DNA of 64,000 nucleotides, from positions 62,001 through 126,000 of the forward strand of contig MCFH01000036.1 of the NCBI GenBank assembly GCA_002104945.1, given 5' to 3'. A program made the translations under genes and the position numbers. Within the stretch, counting starts at the first letter, position 1; every line of letters starts with the position of its first letter. Shown here in pieces: positions 39,223-64,000 of this stretch. Under the pieces are notes generated by a model, which did not search any database, had not been told where the DNA came from, and was given only the letters and a program-made list of their open reading frames with translations. Origin of the DNA: Piromyces finnis finn (taxonomy: Eukaryota; Fungi; Neocallimastigomycota).

Positions 39223-41948
39223 TATATTAAATAAGCAATTACAATTATTATAAAAAAATAAATATACTAATAATGAAGTACCTTTTTTTGTTCAACTATA
39301 TTTTATAATTTAAATTTATTTATTATAAGATTATTTTTTTAATTTTTATTTAAATTTAAATTGATTGATTTATTCTAATCCTTTATTCTCATTCTAAGTT
39401 TAATCATTTTACTTTTTTTAACTTTATTGTATAAATTATTCTCCCATTGTTAAAAAAAAAAAAAAACTAACTTTAGAAATAAAATAATGATAATTAATAT
39501 AAAAATTTTTTTATTACTAATTAAATATTTTTTGAAAAAGGAATTTTTTTTTAAGACTAAAGGTGTTATTATCAAGTTTAGATTCACAAGTGGATTGATA
39601 AGAAGGAAAGAAAAAATAAGTTATCTGTAAAAATAAAATACATTCCAAAATGTTTTATGTATTTTCTTATGCAATTGTATTTTATAAAATTATAGATTAA
39701 TATTGTGCCAATATATATTTAAAAATAAATATAAATAAATAAAAGAATATTAAACCCCAAATAATTATATAAATAAATTTTAAGTGTAGATTTATTTTTG
39801 ACAGTGTTATCTATATAACAAAACTTTAATATTTATAAGCAATTATATAATAGAATAAATAGGTTAGAATATAAAAATTTAATCTATTGTTTTTGTTTAG
39901 TTTATATATTGATTACTTTTACGAAAAAAAAATCACATAATGAAATAGTGATGATTAATAGTAAATAAATAAATGTTTATATTTTAAGCTTGTAAAGAAA
40001 GAATTTTATAATTTTATTATAAAATTCTTTCTTTATAATTAATTTCCTTTTTTTATATAGGTCTTACTAAAACACAACAATATTATTTGTTTTTTTTTTT
40101 CGTTCACTATGTTAATAAGACAGTTAGATATAACAGATTTTATTTATGTATTCCATTTAATAAAACATATTTAAATTTATTACTTTTTTTTTTTTTTTTA
40201 TTATTTTATGTTTATCTTAAATAATATTGGTTTATTCTATGTATTTTATAATAAAATACCTCTTTTTTTTTGCTTATTAAATTTTATAGTTTATTTAAAC
40301 ATAACCTAATTATTTGAAAGTAATATATATGAATGATATTATCTAATTTGTTGTAATACCTATTTTATTATTTATAATGTAGATTTATATTATGCACTTT
40401 ATTTTTTTTAATCCTTTCTAAAAAAGATCTAAAATTTTTATTTTTTTTTTATATTTTATTTTAATAGCAAATATTCCACTTATTGATATAAATAAATAAA
40501 AACTTTAATAATCAATGTTCAGCCAAGATATTCATTATTAAAATTTTGTTTTATTTTCCGCTATATAAAAATTAATTATTCCTATAGATTATAAACTCAA
40601 AAAATTAGATGATGATAAAAATAATATTTAAAACTATAAATAGAAATGCTATTCTTTATTTTTGAATAATATCTTTTAATTAATTAGTCAATTAAAAACT
40701 TTTAATATTAAATTAAGTAGAAACAATACTATTCAGCAGCTAATGATTTTTTAAGGTTATTATTTATAAACAGACGATTATATTAACATAATTAATGTAA
40801 TCTGTAATTTTTTAATCATTGAAAAAAGTAAACACTAAATGGATAACTTTATATAAATAAATAAAACTCACAACACTATATATATAATAAATTAAATTTA
40901 CATTTTTTTTTTCAATAATATAAAGTGTAAACAATAAATGAATTTATTTAGTTGACCTGGATTTTATATCTTTTTTTTTATTATTATTCTAATTTTACAA
41001 ATAACTATCAAGGATTTAAATCTTTTTTTTTTTTTTTTATTATTATTCTAATTTTACATAGTATGTACTGTACTATTAGTATTATTTGTAAATACATTTT
41101 CAAGACTGTTACATTGTTTATTAATAAACCAATTAGACTAATATTTCTTTCTTTTACATTCATTCTATCTTACTTATTTTGTATACATTTTTTCGTAATG
41201 GAATAGACTTTTAATGGTGGGTTACATTACTAATGAAAAGTGCTATTTTATTTTCCTTTTTATTTTTATATATCCCTATCCTAATGGTATATGTATATAT
41301 TTCTATTATTTTAAAGTTAGTATTATTGATAAAAGTTAATATAATATACATTAAATAGAATAATGAGTACTTTATATATTATATAATAGTAATATTTTCT
41401 TTGTATATTTTGTTAAAAACTTTAAATAATAATTGGGGAATTTATTTGGTAATTTAATAAATTTCTTATTATTTAAAGTTAATTAAAAAGATAGTAAAAT
41501 TTAATATATCAATGAAATTATATATTAAATTATGGAAAAAAATAAATTTAATAAAAAAATTAATATTTTATTTTATATATAAAATAAATTAAATATTTAT
41601 TATATTATATTCCTACTATATGCTCCAATATTTTTATTAATTTAAGTAAATGGAAAAATGAATAGTAATTTGGAAAGATGAATAGTTTAATTTATTATGC
41701 AATATATTACCATTAAATTATTAATATATATTAAATGGAAAATTAAATATAAAACATTTCTACAATTTTTGAGGAAATAAAAAAATATTGTTTAGACTTT
41801 AATTAAAAAGTAATGAATCATTTTTTAATGATTAATTATAGATGACATAAGGGTAAATAAAACGATGATAATAGTAAATGAGAATAAAACAATTAAAACG
41901 ATGATAATAGAAAAGGAGAATAAAACAATATATTTATGAAATATACCA

Positions 41949-42498
41949 GTCGTTCCAGTTTCTATCCTGGTTGTTAAGACCCCCGCTTAGCATTCATAAG
42001 GCTTCTGGTTCGACCCCCGCCATTGACAGTTCTTTAGCGATTTTCCTGTTTCAGGTTTGCGCTTAAAGTATAGGGGTTAAAGGTCAATTCAGGTAAGTAT
42101 AACTATACCACCGGACTCTACCCTAAGCAGTTAATTCAGATTGGTAGTTTTCTCCGTATCAAGCGGTTTTCCCACTGAAGTTTAGAGTATATGTAGGAAG
42201 GGGTATCAATTAATTCACAGATTACTAACTATGGTCTTTGAGGGTTGTTCTCATCGTTAATCATCCTTCGCCAATAAAGGTTCAGGAGATCACTGGTGTT
42301 GGTAGCTCGGTCTTTGTGTGATAGGATCGTTAAGAGCAATAAGCCATTCCATATTAGCCCTGCCCAGAGGGATGATTGTGCCGACGTCGTTCTGATATGG
42401 CAATGTACAATAATGTACAATCACATACCATATATAACTCAGGGGGGGTTAGATGAGGATATATGGAAGTCTAAAAAAAAAAAAAAAAAAAAAAAAAA
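41949..42498 (+). mobile_element. Probable tRNA-derived SINE (tRNA-like head, GC-richer body, poly(A) tail, 13-bp TSD)
   Basis: TSD ATGAAATATACCA at 41936-41948 and 42498-42510; A26 tail at 42473-42498; B-box GGTTCGACCCC at 42007-42017 about 60 nt from the 5' end; no run of 5 or more T in the body; GC content far above the flanks. Confidence 0.8.
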
Positions 42499-43975
42499 TG
42501 AAATATACCATCACGATATGATGTTAAATCATTTGTTCAATGAGAATATGCATCTATTTTTATTATTATTCATTTTAAAAAAGAAATAGTACAAATTAAA
42601 ACCTTTTATTTTTATTTATATAATTCATATCTAACACATTAATGATTCTTCTTATATATATATATTTTTTATTATTAGTAAATTTAAAATTTATGGCTAT
42701 TATCCATTCATTAGATGAAAGAAAAACTTTTATCCATTCATTCTGTTTTTATTTTTAAAAAATACTTTTATATATTGTTTATGATACTATGTAAAAACAG
42801 AAAATATTAATAATAATGTAATTCTTTTACCTTTTATTTTAATATATCATTCCATTCATACCACACAAATTAGTTATTATTTTTAACTATTTTTATATAA
42901 TTTACCATTTATTTTATATATAATAAAAATTAATTTGTACAATTTTGTATATAAGGTGATATGAAGCATTAAAATAAATTAAAAAAAAAAAGATAAAACT
43001 TTTTTTTATAATATTGACAATATATTGTTAAAGTGATACTCTTTTTTTTAATTCAATCAAATTCCTTCTTCTATTTTCTTATGACTATTTTTTTACTTTA
43101 TTATTTTTTTTTAATTCCACTCAATTTTTTATAGCTTATATTTTAAAAGTATAATACTTGTAAATGGGATACATTATTATTATTTTTTTTGTTTATTTTT
43201 TTCTCTCATAAAATAAATTAATTTTCCTGTTATTGTCATATTTTATTAATTTAATTATTAAAAATTAATTATTCTAATCAGATTATTATCATTATTTTTA
43301 CCATTTATTTTTATTCTATTGATCATTTTAATCGATAATACCCCTATTTTTTAAAGTTTAATTGTAATGAAGACTTTTATTAAATGAAAGTAATATATAG
43401 AATATATTAAAAATAATGAGAGTAATTTAATTTATATTTTTCTCTTTTTAATTAAAAAAAGACAACTATTATATTACAATAGGAAAATTATATTATTAGT
43501 TATGACAATTTTAAATTAAAAATCTTTTTGTCAATTCTTTATTAATAAACTTTAATTAATATAAAATATATATAATATTATTCATTAGTAATGGTGTTTT
43601 TTTTATTATCGGAATTAAGGATTATTAATCCATTTTTTAGTGTAAGATCATATAATGCTAATTATTAATAAATTTTAAATAATAATAATAATAATAGTAT
43701 TAATAATAATAATTTTTTTTATAGAAAATATTGTAAATTTCTATAAAATATATTATATATTATATATATTAAATATATTAAAACATAAAAAAAAAAAAAG
43801 TATAAATAGGTTTTTAATTTCTTTTTTTTTTTTTTTTCATTAATTAAAACAATAATTTGTTTTATAATTAAAAAAAAAGAATTTTTGTTCGCCGGAACGA
43901 ACTAAAAAAAAATTTTTTATTATAGTATTTTATTATTATTGAATAATAATATTTTATTTACATTTTTATTTAAAA

Positions 43976-46261
43976 ATGCCATCTATTAGATCTGCTCTTG
44001 CTCTTCTCGGTGCTACTGCTGCTATTGCTGCTCCAATGCAAAAGCGTGCTAGCGATGAATACGGTAGACGTGTTACTGATCTTTACGATGTTATGACTGG
44101 TAATGGTTCTTACAGTTCTGAATACTTCTCTGCTGAAAAGGTTCCATACCACTCTGTTGAAACTCTTATGGTTGAAGCTCCAGATCATGGTCACGAATCT
44201 GTCTCTGAAACCTTCTCTTTCTGGATTTGGTTAGAAGCTGTTAACGGTAAGATCACTGGTAACTACGATGGTGTCGAAGAAGCCTGGAACTACTTAGAAA
44301 AGCACATTATTCCAGACAGCAAGAACCAACCAGGTAACAGTAAGTACAACCCATCTTCCCCAGCTACTTACGCTGCTGAACACGATGATATTGATGGTTA
44401 CCCATCTAAACTTATCTTCCAAGATGGTATTGTTGGTGAAGATCCAATTGCTAAGGAACTTTCTCAAGCCTACGGTAACTGGGATATCTACATCATGCAC
44501 TGGATTATTGATGGTGATAACTGGTACGGTTATGGTCAACAAGGTGATGGTACTTCTAAGCCATCTTTCATTAACACCTTCCAACGTGGTGCTTCCGAAT
44601 CTACTTGGAAGACTGTTCCACACCCATGTTGGGAAGCCATGAAGTGGGGTGGTCGTAACGGTTTCTTAGATCTTTTCACTGTTGATAACTCCTACGCTAA
44701 GCAATGGAGATACACTGCTGCTCCAGATGCTGATGCTCGTGCTGTTCAAGCTGCTTACTTCGCCTACATCTGGGCTGAAGAAGATGGTGTTAACCTTTCT
44801 TCTGTTGCTGCTAAGGCTGCCAAGCTTGGTGATTACTTACGTTACGCTCAATACGATAAATACTTCAAGAAGATTGGTAACTGTGTTGGTTCTGACAAAT
44901 GCTCTGCTGGTCGTGGTAAGAACTCTGCTCACTACCTTATCTCCTGGTACTTCGCCTGGGGTGGAGGTTTACAAGGTGACTGGGCCTGGAGAATTGGTTC
45001 TTCTCACACTCACAGTGGTTACCAAAACCCATTAGCTGCCTGGATTCTTTCTACTCAAGCTGCCTTTAAGCCAAAGTCTTCCACTGGTGCTAAGGATTGG
45101 GCTACTTCTCTTGACCGTCAATTAGAATTATTCAGATGGTTACAAACCCCAGAAGGTTGTATTGCTGGTGGTGCCACTAACTCATGGCAAGGTTCTTACG
45201 CTCAACCATCCAGTGATATCACTACCTTCTACGGTATGTGGTACGACTGGCAACCAGTTTACCACGACCCACCATCCAACAACTGGACTGGTATGCAAGG
45301 TTGGGGTATGGAACGTGTCTGTTCCTTATACTACGTTTCCGGTGATGAAAGAGCTGGAAAGGTTTGCCAAGAATGGGCCAAGTGGGTTAAGGACACTACT
45401 CGTGTCAGTGGTGGTGAAATTGTTCACGCTACTAACCTTGACTGGTCTGGTAACCCAGATGAATGGAATTCTTCCAACTTCAACAAGTCTAACCTTAACC
45501 GTTCCCTTCACGGAACTGTTTCTTCCGAAGGTGTTGATCTTGGTTCCATCGCTTCTATCATTAAGGGTTTAATGTGGGTTTCTATGAGAGATGGTGACCA
45601 AGAAGGTATTAACCTTTCTATTGAAGTTATGGATGCCATTGAAAACTACAAGGATGATCTTGGTTACTCTTCCCACGAAGCTCGTGGTGATTACGACAAG
45701 TTCGGTGGTGAAGTTTACATTCCATCTGGTTGGACTGGTAAGAATGCTCAAGGTGCCAACATTAAGAGTGGTGTTACTTTCATTGATATCCGTCCAAAGT
45801 ACAAGCAAGATCCAGATTGGGCTCAAGTTGAAGAATACCTTAACGGTGGTAACCCACCAGAATTCAACTACCACAGATTCTGGGCTCAAACTGAAATTGC
45901 TGTTGCTAACGGTCTTATTTCCATTTATGGTTTACAAAAGGATGGTTCCTCCAACAACGACAACAACAATTCTAGCAATGAAACTACTGTTTGCTCTGCT
46001 TCTATTACTAACCAAGGTTACAAGTGTTGTAAGGTTGGATGTCAAACCATTTACACCGATGCTGACGGTAACTGGGGTGTTGAAAACAACCAATGGTGTG
46101 GATGTGGTACTGCTCCAGCTCCAAAGCCAAAGTGTCCAGTTGCTATTACTAACCAAGGATATCCATGCTGTAAGTCCTGCGGTACCGTCTATTACACCGA
46201 TGCTGATGGTGAATGGGGTGTCGAAAACGGTGACTGGTGTGGTATGCCAACCAAATGTTAA
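43976..46261 (+). CDS. cel48A: Cellulosomal glycoside hydrolase family 48 cellobiohydrolase with two CBM10/non-catalytic dockerin domains
   Basis: Signal peptide MPSIRSALALLGATAAIAAP followed by MQKR. GH48 motifs: VPYHSVETLMVEAPDHGHESVSE, FINTFQRGASESTW, QWRYTAAPDADARA, HYLISWYFAWGG, YHRFWAQTEIA. Two C-terminal Cys-rich repeats (GYxCC...YTDADGxWGVENxxWCG). Intronless, strongly biased codons. Confidence 0.97.
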   Translation: MPSIRSALALLGATAAIAAPMQKRASDEYGRRVTDLYDVMTGNGSYSSEYFSAEKVPYHSVETLMVEAPDHGHESVSETFSFWIWLEAVNGKITGNYDGVEEAWNYLEKHIIPDSKNQPGNSKYNPSSPATYAAEHDDIDGYPSKLIFQDGIVGEDPIAKELSQAYGNWDIYIMHWIIDGDNWYGYGQQGDGTSKPSFINTFQRGASESTWKTVPHPCWEAMKWGGRNGFLDLFTVDNSYAKQWRYTAAPDADARAVQAAYFAYIWAEEDGVNLSSVAAKAAKLGDYLRYAQYDKYFKKIGNCVGSDKCSAGRGKNSAHYLISWYFAWGGGLQGDWAWRIGSSHTHSGYQNPLAAWILSTQAAFKPKSSTGAKDWATSLDRQLELFRWLQTPEGCIAGGATNSWQGSYAQPSSDITTFYGMWYDWQPVYHDPPSNNWTGMQGWGMERVCSLYYVSGDERAGKVCQEWAKWVKDTTRVSGGEIVHATNLDWSGNPDEWNSSNFNKSNLNRSLHGTVSSEGVDLGSIASIIKGLMWVSMRDGDQEGINLSIEVMDAIENYKDDLGYSSHEARGDYDKFGGEVYIPSGWTGKNAQGANIKSGVTFIDIRPKYKQDPDWAQVEEYLNGGNPPEFNYHRFWAQTEIAVANGLISIYGLQKDGSSNNDNNNSSNETTVCSASITNQGYKCCKVGCQTIYTDADGNWGVENNQWCGCGTAPAPKPKCPVAITNQGYPCCKSCGTVYYTDADGEWGVENGDWCGMPTKC

Positions 46262-60739: not shown

Positions 60740-61767
60740 TTTTTACTTTGTTAAATAAAAATAACAGAATTTATAAAAAATTTTGATTTTGAAATAAAAA
60801 CTATTTTTATTACACTATTGATTTCAAAAATACTCTATCTTCTTTTAATAATATAGATGAAACACATTACAATCTAGAGTAACTTTTTTTTAATTTTTCT
60901 ATTTTCAAAATATCTTTTGGCATTGTTTGTTTGTGATTTATTGCCATGCAAATTTAATTTTTGCAATTCAAAAAAATTGAATGTATACATTGGTAGTTCT
61001 TTTAATCGATTATTATTTATGTCTATTTCTTTTATATTTTTAATATTTAATATGTCATAGGGTAATTCTGTTAATTCCTTTCCAAATAAATTTAGTTATC
61101 TTGGTTTATAAAGAATGAATGATGGTTTTAATTTGGTTAAATTTTCTATTTCCTTTGGTATTTTTGATAACTTATTAAATCTAATATTTAAATTTCTTAA
61201 ATTAATTAAATTGCCTATTTCTTTTGGTAATTCACTTATTTCATTATTATTTATATTTAAAGTTGTTAACTTGATTAAATTTCCTATTTTATTTGGTAAA
61301 TTGGTTATTTTATTATGATTTAAATATAAAACGTTTAAGCTTGTTAAATTTTCTATTACTTTTGGTAATTTTCTTATTTTATTATAACTTAGATTCAATT
61401 CTTTTAAATTGGTTAATTTTCCTATTTCTTTTGGTAATATGATTATTTTATTATTATTTAGATTCAAGCTTTTTAAATTAACTAAATTTCCTATTTCTTT
61501 TGGTAATATGAATATTATATTATTGATTAGATTTAATTCTTCTAAATTAATTAAATTTCCTATTTCTTTTGGTAATTCACTTATTTCATTTTGACTGAGA
61601 TTTAATTTTTTTAAATTGGTTAAATTTCCTATTTCTTTCGGTAATATTGATATCTTATTATCACTCAAATATAAATACTCTAAATTTTTTAAATCTCCTA
61701 TTTCTTTTGGAATTCATGTATTATAATTTTAATTAAATTAATAATAAAGTTTAAAATATTTGATGCC

Positions 61768-61820
<53 letters not shown>

Positions 61821-64000
61821 CTTTTGGAATTATTGATATCTTGTTATTTGTAATATTTAAATTGGTTAAATTAGTTAAATTTCCTATTTCTTTCGGTAAT
61901 TCATTTATTTTATTATTATTAAAATTTAATTTTTGCAATTTCGAAAAATTATATACACACAAAGGTAATTCTGTTAATTTATTATTACTTATATCTATTT
62001 CTTTTACATTCCTAGCATTTACTATGTCAAAAGGTAATTCTGTTAATCTCCTTTCAGATAAATTTATTCTTTCACTATCATTATTATATACATATTTTCT
62101 ATTGAGTAAATGATCATTAACACTTAATAATCCTAATTTAAGCAAATTTTCTATTTCTTTTGGTAATTTGGTTATTTTATTATTGCATAGATTCAATTTT
62201 TTTAATCGGGTTAACCTTCCTATTTCTTTTGGTACTTCTGTTAAAAAATTATATTCAATATTTAATTCAGTTAAACTAATTAAATATTCAATCTCTTTTG
62301 GTACTTCTTTTATTAAATTATGTTTAAAATTTATATTGGTTAGTTTACTTAAATATTTTATTTCTTTTGGTACTTCTTTTATTGAATTATTCTCAAAATT
62401 TAAATTGGTTAGTTCACGTAAATATTTTATTTCTTTTGGTACTTCTTTTATTAAATTATGCGCAAAATTTAAATTGGTTAGTTCACGTAAATATTTTATT
62501 TCTTTTGGTACTTCTTTTATTAAATTATTCTCAAAATTTAAATCGGTTAGTTCACGTAAATATTTTATTTCTTTTGGTATTTCCATTATTTTATTAAAAC
62601 TTGAATTTAAACTATTTAAATTGACTAAATATCTTATTTCTTTAGGTAATTCACTTATTTTATTATTACTAATATCTAACCTACTCAAATACAAAAAACT
62701 ACGTATAAATAATGGTAACTCTGTTAATTGATTACTACTTATATCCATTTCATTTACATTGCTAGCATTTATCAAGTCAATAGGTAATTTTGTTAATCTT
62801 TTACCACGCAGATTTATTTTTTTATCATTAGAATTATAAGTACTTAAACGCGAATCAATAATTAATGATTGCAATTTAGTTAAATTTCCTATTTCTTTTG
62901 GTAATATGAATATTATATTATTGATTAGATTTAATTCTTCTAAATTAATTAAATTTCCTATTTCTTTTGGTAATTCACTTATTTTATTTTGACTGAGATT
63001 TAATTTTTTTAAATTGGTTAATTTTCCTATTTCTTTTGGTAATATTGATATATTATTAACACTCAAATATAAATACTCTAAATTTTTTAAATCTCCTATT
63101 TCTTTTGGAATTATTGATATCTTGTTATTTTTAATATTTAAATAGGTTAAATTAATGATATTTCCTATTTCTTTTGGTAATATTGATATATTATTATCAC
63201 TCAAATATAAATACTCTAAATTTTTTAAATCTCCTATTTCTTTTGGTATTTCACTTATATTATTATTATTTAAATTCAATTCTTTTAAAGTGGTTAAATT
63301 TTCTATTTCTTTTAGTATCTCTTTTATCATATTCTTACTTACATTTAATTTTTGCAATTTCGAAAAATTATATATAAATAATGGTAACTCTGTTAATTGA
63401 TTACTACTTATATCTATTTCTTTTACATTTCTAATATTTACTAAGTCCAAAGGTAATTCTGTTAATTCTTTTCTACATAAATTTATTTTTTCACTAGTAA
63501 TGAGATATCCATATTTTCTAATGGATAAATGATCATCAACACTTAATAATTGTAATTTAGATAAATTTCTTACTTCTTTTGGTAATAACTTTATTTTATT
63601 GTTATATAAATCTAATTTTTTTAATTCGGTTAAACTTCCTATTTCTTTCGGAATCATTGATAATCTATTATTTTCGAGATTTAAGTTTTCTAGGCTTTTT
63701 AATTTCCCTATTTCTTTTGGTAATTTTGATATTTTATCATTACTTCCAAGATTTAAAACAGTTAATCTATTCAAATTTGCTATTCTTTTCGGTATTTTTG
63801 ATATACAATTGTGTTTAATATTTAAGTTTGTCAATTTATTTAAATTTTCTATTCCTTTTGGAATGTTAGTTAATTTATTATTTCCAAGATTTAAATCATT
63901 TAATTTATTCAATTTTCTTATTTCTTCTGGTATTTCTAGTATTTGATTATTTGATAAATTTAAATTTTGTAAATTATTTAAATTTCCTATCTCTTTTGGA
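60740..64000 (-). pseudogene. LRR-3: long LRR gene (5' end beyond the window) disrupted by a poly(A) insertion, a nonsense codon and a frameshift
   Basis: The frame is open from the window edge to the insertion at 61715-61818 and resumes in ORF 61096-61668. TAA at 61096-61098 is followed in frame by LNLFGKELTELPYDILNIKNIKEID, then a frameshift before TMPKDILKIEKLKKVTLDCNV (cap). Confidence 0.85.
61715..61818 (+). mobile_element. Short poly(A)-tailed retroposed insertion with 13-bp TSD, antisense to LRR-3
   Basis: 56-nt body plus A48, flanked by TTCTTTTGGAATT at 61702-61714 and 61819-61831. The empty-site sequence survives in the duplicated LRR block near 63090-63125. Confidence 0.88.

Follow-up and report, generated by a model that had tools for sequence, protein, structure and literature searches.

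In the Alu/L1 system, short interspersed nuclear elements (SINEs) are mobilised in trans by a poly(A)-tailed long interspersed nuclear element (LINE), and the copies show target-site duplications (TSDs) at a T|A-type nick, 5′ truncations and extra bases at the 5′ end. The published fungal SINEs (MgSINE, Foxy, Egr1, EGH24 and AfuSINE) come from ascomycetes and carry heads related to tRNA or 5S rRNA (PMC5063351), which agrees with the remark in an earlier sequence-based prediction (the original prediction) that SINEs are rare in fungi and mostly known from ascomycetes. Full-text literature searches found no SINEs in Neocallimastigomycota. Here, we describe an insert in a stretch of 64,000 nt from the anaerobic gut fungus Piromyces finnis (assembly GCA_002104945.1, contig MCFH01000036.1, positions 62,001 to 126,000), referred to as the window. 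The insert at window positions 41936-42510 is very probably a recent copy of a small SINE-type family of about 30 loci, termed family 1, which is short, non-coding, poly(A)-tailed, non-autonomous, modular and mobilised by LINEs.

Family 1 shares with MgSINE of Magnaporthe, Foxy of Fusarium and AfuSINE2 of Aspergillus the size class of 140-900 bp, copy numbers of tens to hundreds, the presence of TSDs, the lack of coding capacity and probably the dependence on LINEs (PMC5063351). The heads of AfuSINE2 have degenerate boxes too and do not form a cloverleaf, and for the heads of MgSINE, Foxy and AfuSINE2 an alignment to a specific tRNA or to 5S rRNA is described (PMC5063351). The family-1 head, on the other hand, matches no tRNA model. 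In contrast to the ascomycete hosts of these elements, the host of family 1 is an early-diverging anaerobic fungus. The likeness to Alu and L1 extends to a poly(A) tail with no LINE-derived 3′ sequence found, TSDs (about 13-17 bp) formed at a nick of the T|A type, 5′ truncations, extra 5′ bases and a putative partner LINE that is itself poly(A)-tailed; the LINE probably makes use of the poly(A) tail in family 1 as well. Unlike Alu, family 1 has a head that is not derived from 7SL, and it is a 524-nt monomer with a long unique body.

New in this study is a distinct, small SINE-like family without the LINE-derived module of its siblings, the head of which is shared with a family on contigs apparently from another organism. 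In addition, compensatory changes speak against an anticodon-loop reading of this head, and its B-box-like motif is part of a predicted consensus hairpin. The genome harbors several very young SINE families, apparently still active, with one conserved head, together with abundant LINEs with long open reading frames (ORFs). Such a system is suited to studies of how SINE heads are recruited and exchanged, permits a comparison of SINEs carrying a LINE-derived RNA handle with those relying on poly(A), and offers insertion-polymorphism markers for anaerobic fungi.

Copies, age and insertion signature of family 1

The 524-nt unit starts with GTCGTTCCAG and ends with GGAAGTCT, followed in the window by 26 A. 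A search of the genome (56,455,805 bases in 232 contigs) with this unit gave 44 scored matches, comprising 17 full-length copies at 98-100% identity, several 5′-truncated copies and an older set at 84-88% identity. Of the exact family-specific patterns, searched with up to two mismatches, the one for the 3′ end detected 31 loci and the one for the segment following the head 28, with 0 in the controls, and the size of the family is about 30 loci. The insert is not a single-copy sequence, the case which the original prediction had set against its own reading; the dispersed copies that start at a common 5′ end and differ in their TSDs, for which it had suggested a BLASTN search, were found in this genome, and the proposed non-autonomous retroposon family is supported by dispersed, non-coding and poly(A)-tailed copies with individual TSDs.

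For inspection copy by copy, 30 loci were fetched, in which nearly every copy has its own TSD, and 25 copies of family 1 and of the sibling family 2 (see below) were scorable for TSD statistics. The TSDs are 12-17 bp long with a mode of 13-14 bp, a T is found at position -1 in 21 of the 25 sites, the first TSD base is an A in 20 sites, and the 5′ junction of six copies contains 1-3 additional bases. All full-length copies share one 5′ end; in five young copies, the sequence sets in only at element positions 41-62, with TSDs and tails retained. In every copy, the A-tail follows one fixed 3′ end; the tail lengths vary from A8 to A53 and some tails are expanded to (TAAA)n. The element is non-coding, its longest ORF being 73 aa and running into the tail. 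Because of the individual TSDs of 12-17 bp at a T|A nick, the variable A-tails, the fixed 5′ end or 5′ truncation and the absence of an ORF, this signature is that of LINE-type target-primed reverse transcription of a non-coding RNA. The insert and its TSD are far beyond chance, given that about 30 loci carry the same unit with TSDs that differ from locus to locus. With 524 nt plus tail, dispersed copies, a common 5′ end, an A-tail and LINEs in the same genome, the element is a SINE in operational terms.

Among 23 sampled young copies the mean pairwise difference is only 0.56%, and the window copy equals the family majority throughout the compared sequence (Table 1). Five older copies differ from the young majority by 9-12%, chiefly through G>A and C>T changes. 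The window copy is a very recent insertion of a small and very young family.

Two further observations concern single loci. One full-length copy (L023:1470-1990, corresponding to G000:C2:1151875-1152362) lacks element positions ~39-63, deleted exactly between two GACCCCCGC direct repeats in the head. At two other loci (G000:C227:32532-32686 and G000:C152:600784-600938), the similarity is confined to element positions 363-518, with 99% identity and the same boundaries in both; these loci could belong to another composite element or represent a duplicated fragment.

A conserved head, sibling families and putative partner LINEs

In two of the fetched loci the first 69 nt of family 1 (88% identity) are followed by a different body of ~535 nt. 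These copies, termed family 2, have their own tail and TSDs. Aligned with each other, the two families are nearly identical at positions 1-72 and, past a weak spacer, have one block in common (ATTCAGGTAAGTATAA); their bodies are unrelated, and the last few bases before the tail, GGAAGT, are again similar. Family 2 has the 5′ terminus, the head blocks, the ATTCAGGTAAGTATAA block, the GGAAGT-type 3′ end and the signature of TSD and poly(A) in common with family 1; it differs in its unrelated body and in a LINE-derived two-hairpin module which is absent from family 1. In the genome, a 19-mer from head block 2 was counted 203 times, with none in the reversed control. Compared to the ~30 loci of family 1, this number makes it a minor family among the head carriers, and family 2 accounts for most of the at least 203 heads.

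The same 19-mer was found on two JGI metagenome contigs (L092 and L093) in one metagenome scan and led to the detection of family 3. Its element in L092 comprises 414 nt with poly(A). The head is identical or one base off at positions 1-26 and 42-66, whereas family 3 diverges in the interval 27-41 and throughout the body. The body of family 3 has no match in the P. finnis genome, and for this reason the family presumably belongs to another organism. Across the families, identity in the two head blocks amounts to 96-100%. In the examined loci, each of the 30 distinct head occurrences precedes family-1 or family-2 sequence and not LINE ORFs. Among the changes that are diagnostic for old versus young copies of family 1, none falls into the two conserved blocks (57 nt), three affect the loop within the central hairpin, and the 444 nt of the body contain 25. 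The whole head does not differ significantly from the body (Fisher p = 0.79), and only the two blocks are free of changes. The head is a conserved, portable module and presumably has a function. Since it is shared across families with unrelated bodies, the build is the classic modular SINE architecture.

At G000:C150:542376-542614, three exact head 19-mers are located on the same strand with a spacing of exactly 110 bp, which may represent a tandem array of heads. A further 19-mer in a Schlesneria metagenome-assembled genome (L094:6113-6131, 51% GC), obtained in a scan of prokaryote genomes, was rejected as a chance match with neither head context nor tRNA.

Within the conserved block ATTCAGGTAAGTATAA, the sequence CAGGTAAGTAT fits the consensus of a 5′ splice site perfectly and presumably would be complementary to the 5′ end of U1 small nuclear RNA (snRNA). 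Family 3 has TTCAGGTTAT at a comparable place. In family 2, the block opens an AT-rich, intron-like stretch of 52 nt ending in TAG; among the loci examined, no copies without this stretch were found and there is no sign of splicing.

Potential partner LINEs are abundant. At least 150 scored reverse transcriptase (RT) matches were obtained among 1499 candidates, many of them within open frames of 1341-1571 aa. The LINE pieces in the examined loci show RVT_1 and a sub-threshold match to Exo_endo_phos, and a comparison of these pieces with the PDB gave no match. The ORF2 of the LINE in locus L018 ends in an AT-rich 3′ untranslated region (UTR) with an A21 tail, and a second LINE copy in L027 is 88% identical to it. 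Families 2 and 3 carry a module of ~50 nt with two hairpins which the LINE ORF2 also has, within its last codons, and one of the module's pairs covaries between G-C, A-U, U-A and G-U. With a covariance model of the module (R2), the LINE, family 2 and family 3 score 65-77 bits, and young and old family-1 copies gave no hit. Likewise, blastn detected no similarity between family 1 and 820 nt of LINE 3′ sequence, and a further comparison gave no family-1 match. A match to a LINE ORF2 tail, which the original prediction had named as a contrary outcome, was found for family 1 neither by blastn nor by the module model, with one LINE family compared.

Some further loci are of note. The window itself contains a heavily 5′-truncated LINE copy at 61702-61831, in which a long A-tail follows 78 nt of 3′ UTR (61715-61791; 97% identical to the L018 LINE) and the 13-bp TSD TTCTTTTGGAATT is present on both sides, the same signature as in the SINEs. 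An older 5′-truncated, family-2-like copy (L005:483-533, minus strand) has a drifted first hairpin of the module (ACAG...CAGT), and the second hairpin keeps its pairing via G-U. In L058:1-3069, a family-2 copy (minus strand, ~980-1569) is located between an RT piece and a sub-threshold endonuclease-like piece with a GDFN motif, with no TSD across the junction. In the overlap with L018, this endonuclease-like piece lies ~450-530 aa before the ORF2 stop and downstream of the RT, an odd order for an APE-type LINE.

Fold, candidate transcription signals and origin of the head

Folding with RNAfold for each family and with RNAalifold on the alignment predicted one long irregular hairpin for the head, the central hairpin being predicted independently by RNAalifold. 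The consensus is a 66-nt hairpin in which the 5′-terminal GUCG..CCAG would be paired with CUGG..CGAC of the B-box-like motif. This hairpin is 97% paired and is the choice of RNAalifold, compared to 88% for a cloverleaf-like alternative. The outer helices of both folds lie in invariant sequence and are for this reason indistinguishable. The stretch TTAGCAT of family 1 forms the 3′ strand of the 7-bp stem of the central hairpin. Family 3 has ATGGCAT instead, and both changes are compensated on the opposite strand, with pair 27-41 altered from U-A to C-G and pair 29-39 from A-U to U-A.

Regarding transcription by RNA polymerase III (Pol III), the motif predicted as a B box is indeed present: GGTTCGACCCC matches all specified positions of the consensus GGTTCGANNCC, and its first eight bases, GGTTCGAC, are the same in the three families. 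In family 3 these are followed by ACC, not CCC, so that the last consensus C no longer fits. The A-box-like stretch, already described as weak in the original prediction, corresponds at best to TATCCTGGTTG (element positions 15-25) with 6 of 9 specified consensus positions; it starts 44 nt upstream of the B box, which is the start-to-start spacing of the A and B boxes in a tRNA gene, and by our own estimate neither match nor spacing is significant. The absence of longer T-runs, put forward as a further argument, is real, as the body has no T-run of five or more compared to an average of 8.4 such runs per kb in the window. However, it is not above chance and has no statistical weight, because 31% of composition-matched shuffles (40% GC) have no such run either, A-runs of four or more are equally absent from the element, and a T5 is found both in family 2, at head positions 11-15, and in family 3. 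Pol III would be the most likely polymerase, with a probability that we put somewhat above even, and the B-box-like motif as the sole positive indicator of Pol III would act as its promoter.

The original prediction regarded the head as a degenerate tRNA with GTCGTT and ATTGAC as possible ends of the acceptor stem, both of which are present (at the element start, 41949, and at 42022-42027). If the head were a degenerate tRNA, most plausibly tRNA-Ala, family 1 would be a classical tRNA-derived (SINE2-type) element transcribed from an A and a B box. Consistent with this are the perfect B box or T-loop motif, the division of the head by hand into modules of tRNA length, in which the loop TTAGCAT (as in tRNA-Ala with anticodon AGC) lies 13 nt ahead of the GG of the T-arm, the pairing of the cloverleaf-like four-helix fold (24-46% in slid controls), and the partial complementarity to the 5′ end of the stretch past the T-like arm, which is seen in all three families and reaches 9 of 10 positions in family 3. 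This fit requires a D-loop of 15 nt, however, and a tRNA finder and covariance models, a kind of check suggested in the original prediction, gave a tRNA call neither above the level of shuffles nor at E ≤ 10. ARAGORN detected no tRNA in the window with default thresholds, and relaxed settings called the head only where 5-11% of shuffled heads were called as well. Searches with Rfam (4227 families, E ≤ 10) gave no match to tRNA, 5S, 7SL, snRNA or rRNA, neither for the element nor for the isolated heads of family 1 and family 2 (104-106 nt). A custom covariance model built from six tRNA genes of this genome (four isotypes) scores real tRNAs at 67-85 bits and reported no head with filters off at E ≤ 10 in 54 kb. 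The compensatory changes pair bases of TTAGCA and place the supposed anticodon loop in a stem, and the RNAalifold consensus is a long hairpin rather than a cloverleaf. A genuine tRNA-Ala(AGC) for comparison, with the TTAGCAT loop and a T-arm, was not retrieved either, as four pattern searches of the genome gave only SINE variants or nothing. Taken together, we consider tRNA origin unlikely, though with an appreciable share of the probability; the tRNA descent of the head is not supported by sequence and folding models, and it appears as a head with tRNA-like touches that is not recognisably a tRNA. As sources of the head, 5S, 7SL and snRNA are effectively excluded, and the match to a known structural RNA which the original prediction had named as a further contrary outcome did not occur in the Rfam searches. 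Apart from this, tRNA-Arg(TCT) is present in at least 34 near-identical copies in the genome (one at 70.1 bits and 33 at 69.9 bits), and several of these loci also hold a tRNA-Glu(TTC) within ~3 kb.

For family 1 as a LINE-mobilised SINE, the following course of events is proposed. The abundant resident LINEs with poly(A) tails would supply reverse transcriptase and nickase, and their machinery would nick AT-rich DNA at T|A and prime on the A-tail. The RNA would be reverse-transcribed, at times halting inside the structured head, and a target duplication of 12-17 bp would result. The architecture would consist of a conserved head of 66-80 nt, a family-specific body and the A-tail. Because it is common to at least two other families, one apparently from another organism, the head would be the selected functional part, most likely as an internal promoter and/or an RNA feature that makes the source copy transcribable. 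As family 1 has no LINE two-hairpin module, unlike its siblings, its mobilisation would probably proceed via the poly(A) tail alone, as for Alu with L1, or via another LINE family.

Several points weigh against this explanation. Besides the weak A-box-like site and the T5 runs of the sibling families, the B-box-like motif may be conserved for its predicted pairing with the 5′ end and not as a promoter. The LINE clade is not established, since the endonuclease was found only below the Pfam cut-off and no solved structure was matched. Furthermore, the element was compared with the 3′ end of one LINE family, so that others could share the tail of family 1, and the head could stem from a LINE 5′ UTR, the comparison having covered 3′ sequence. 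This last point leads to a LINE deletion derivative, in which a LINE 5′ UTR as the head is fused to 3′ sequence and which is not an independent SINE of the small-RNA type. The module from the last LINE ORF2 codons in families 2 and 3 does document LINE capture in the superfamily. However, family 1 shows no detectable similarity to the LINE 3′ sequence compared (820 nt), the module model is silent on this family, and the heads precede family-1 or family-2 sequence in all 30 cases; such an origin is highly improbable. Somewhat more credit, yet still within the improbable, is given to retrocopies of polyadenylated non-coding RNAs transcribed by RNA polymerase II (Pol II); the source would be a single master gene or a small number of them, driven by a promoter upstream, and the head would be a 5′ RNA element. 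The A-tail after a fixed 3′ end in every copy, the absence of homology to any Pol III RNA, the perfect fit of the conserved block to a 5′ splice site, the T5 within the family-2 head and two discrete subfamilies, as expected from a master-gene history, are in line with Pol II. On the other hand, a portable internal promoter fits better with at least three families from at least two organisms which have unrelated bodies and share the head alone; the number of more than 200 heads and the perfect B-box match also speak against Pol II, as does the intron-like segment, which is retained in all copies examined and gives no sign of splicing. Finally, as a tentative and rather unlikely suggestion, the head might not be a decayed tRNA but the starting point of a new SINE superfamily specific to anaerobic gut fungi. 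It would be defined by the 66-nt hairpin with its pairing between B-box-like motif and 5′ end, followed by the U1-complementary block, would have been fused repeatedly to different bodies across species and might use an unconventional route of transcription or RNA stabilisation.

Boundaries and setting of the insert

The features of the insert are collected in Table 1. The GC-richer insert of ~550 bp with its perfect 13-bp TSD and A26 tail was predicted with coordinates that are all exact. Its GC content is 0.38-0.44 compared to ~0.15 in the flanks, and the empty site before insertion would read ...ATATATTT|ATGAAATATACCA|TCACG.... The body is not an unusually structured RNA, with a folding stability of z = +0.40 for the whole element, and has no match in Rfam.

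Table 1. Features of the family-1 copy and its target site, in window coordinates.
Feature	Position	Strand	Observation
Left TSD ATGAAATATACCA	41936-41948	+	Exact 13-bp repeat of 42498-42510; preceding base is T, in line with the T|A nick seen throughout the family
Complete family-1 retroposon copy, 524-nt unit and A-tail	41949-42498	+	0 substitutions relative to the majority of 23 young copies at 523 aligned positions
Head block 1 (element 1-26), fixed 5′ terminus GTCGTTCCAG...	41949-41974	+	0-1 difference among three families
Central head hairpin (element 24-30 with 38-44), predicted	41972-41992	+	96% of cells paired across the alignment; two compensatory double changes
Head block 2 (element 42-66) GCATTCATAAGGCTTCTGGTTCGAC	41990-42014	+	One difference between families
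B-box-like motif GGTTCGACCCC	42007-42017	+	All 9 specified B-box consensus positions match
Family-specific body	42029-42472	+	Unalignable with family-2 and family-3 bodies except for one short block
Conserved block ATTCAGGTAAGTATAA, 5′ splice-site-like	42087-42102	+	Sole block after the head common to families 1 and 2
Poly(A) tail A26	42473-42498	+	Last A is the first base of the right TSD
Right TSD	42498-42510	+	Exact copy of 41936-41948; first A shared with the tail

An exact-protein look-up with the ORF downstream of the insert, made for an empty or orthologous site, found nothing on record. This ORF (43976-46258) encodes a GH48 protein with two CBM10 dockerin modules and represents a cellulosome gene. 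As predicted, the insert is located 1.5 kb upstream of it, and from this proximity it is conceivable that such insertions could affect the expression of lignocellulose-degrading genes.

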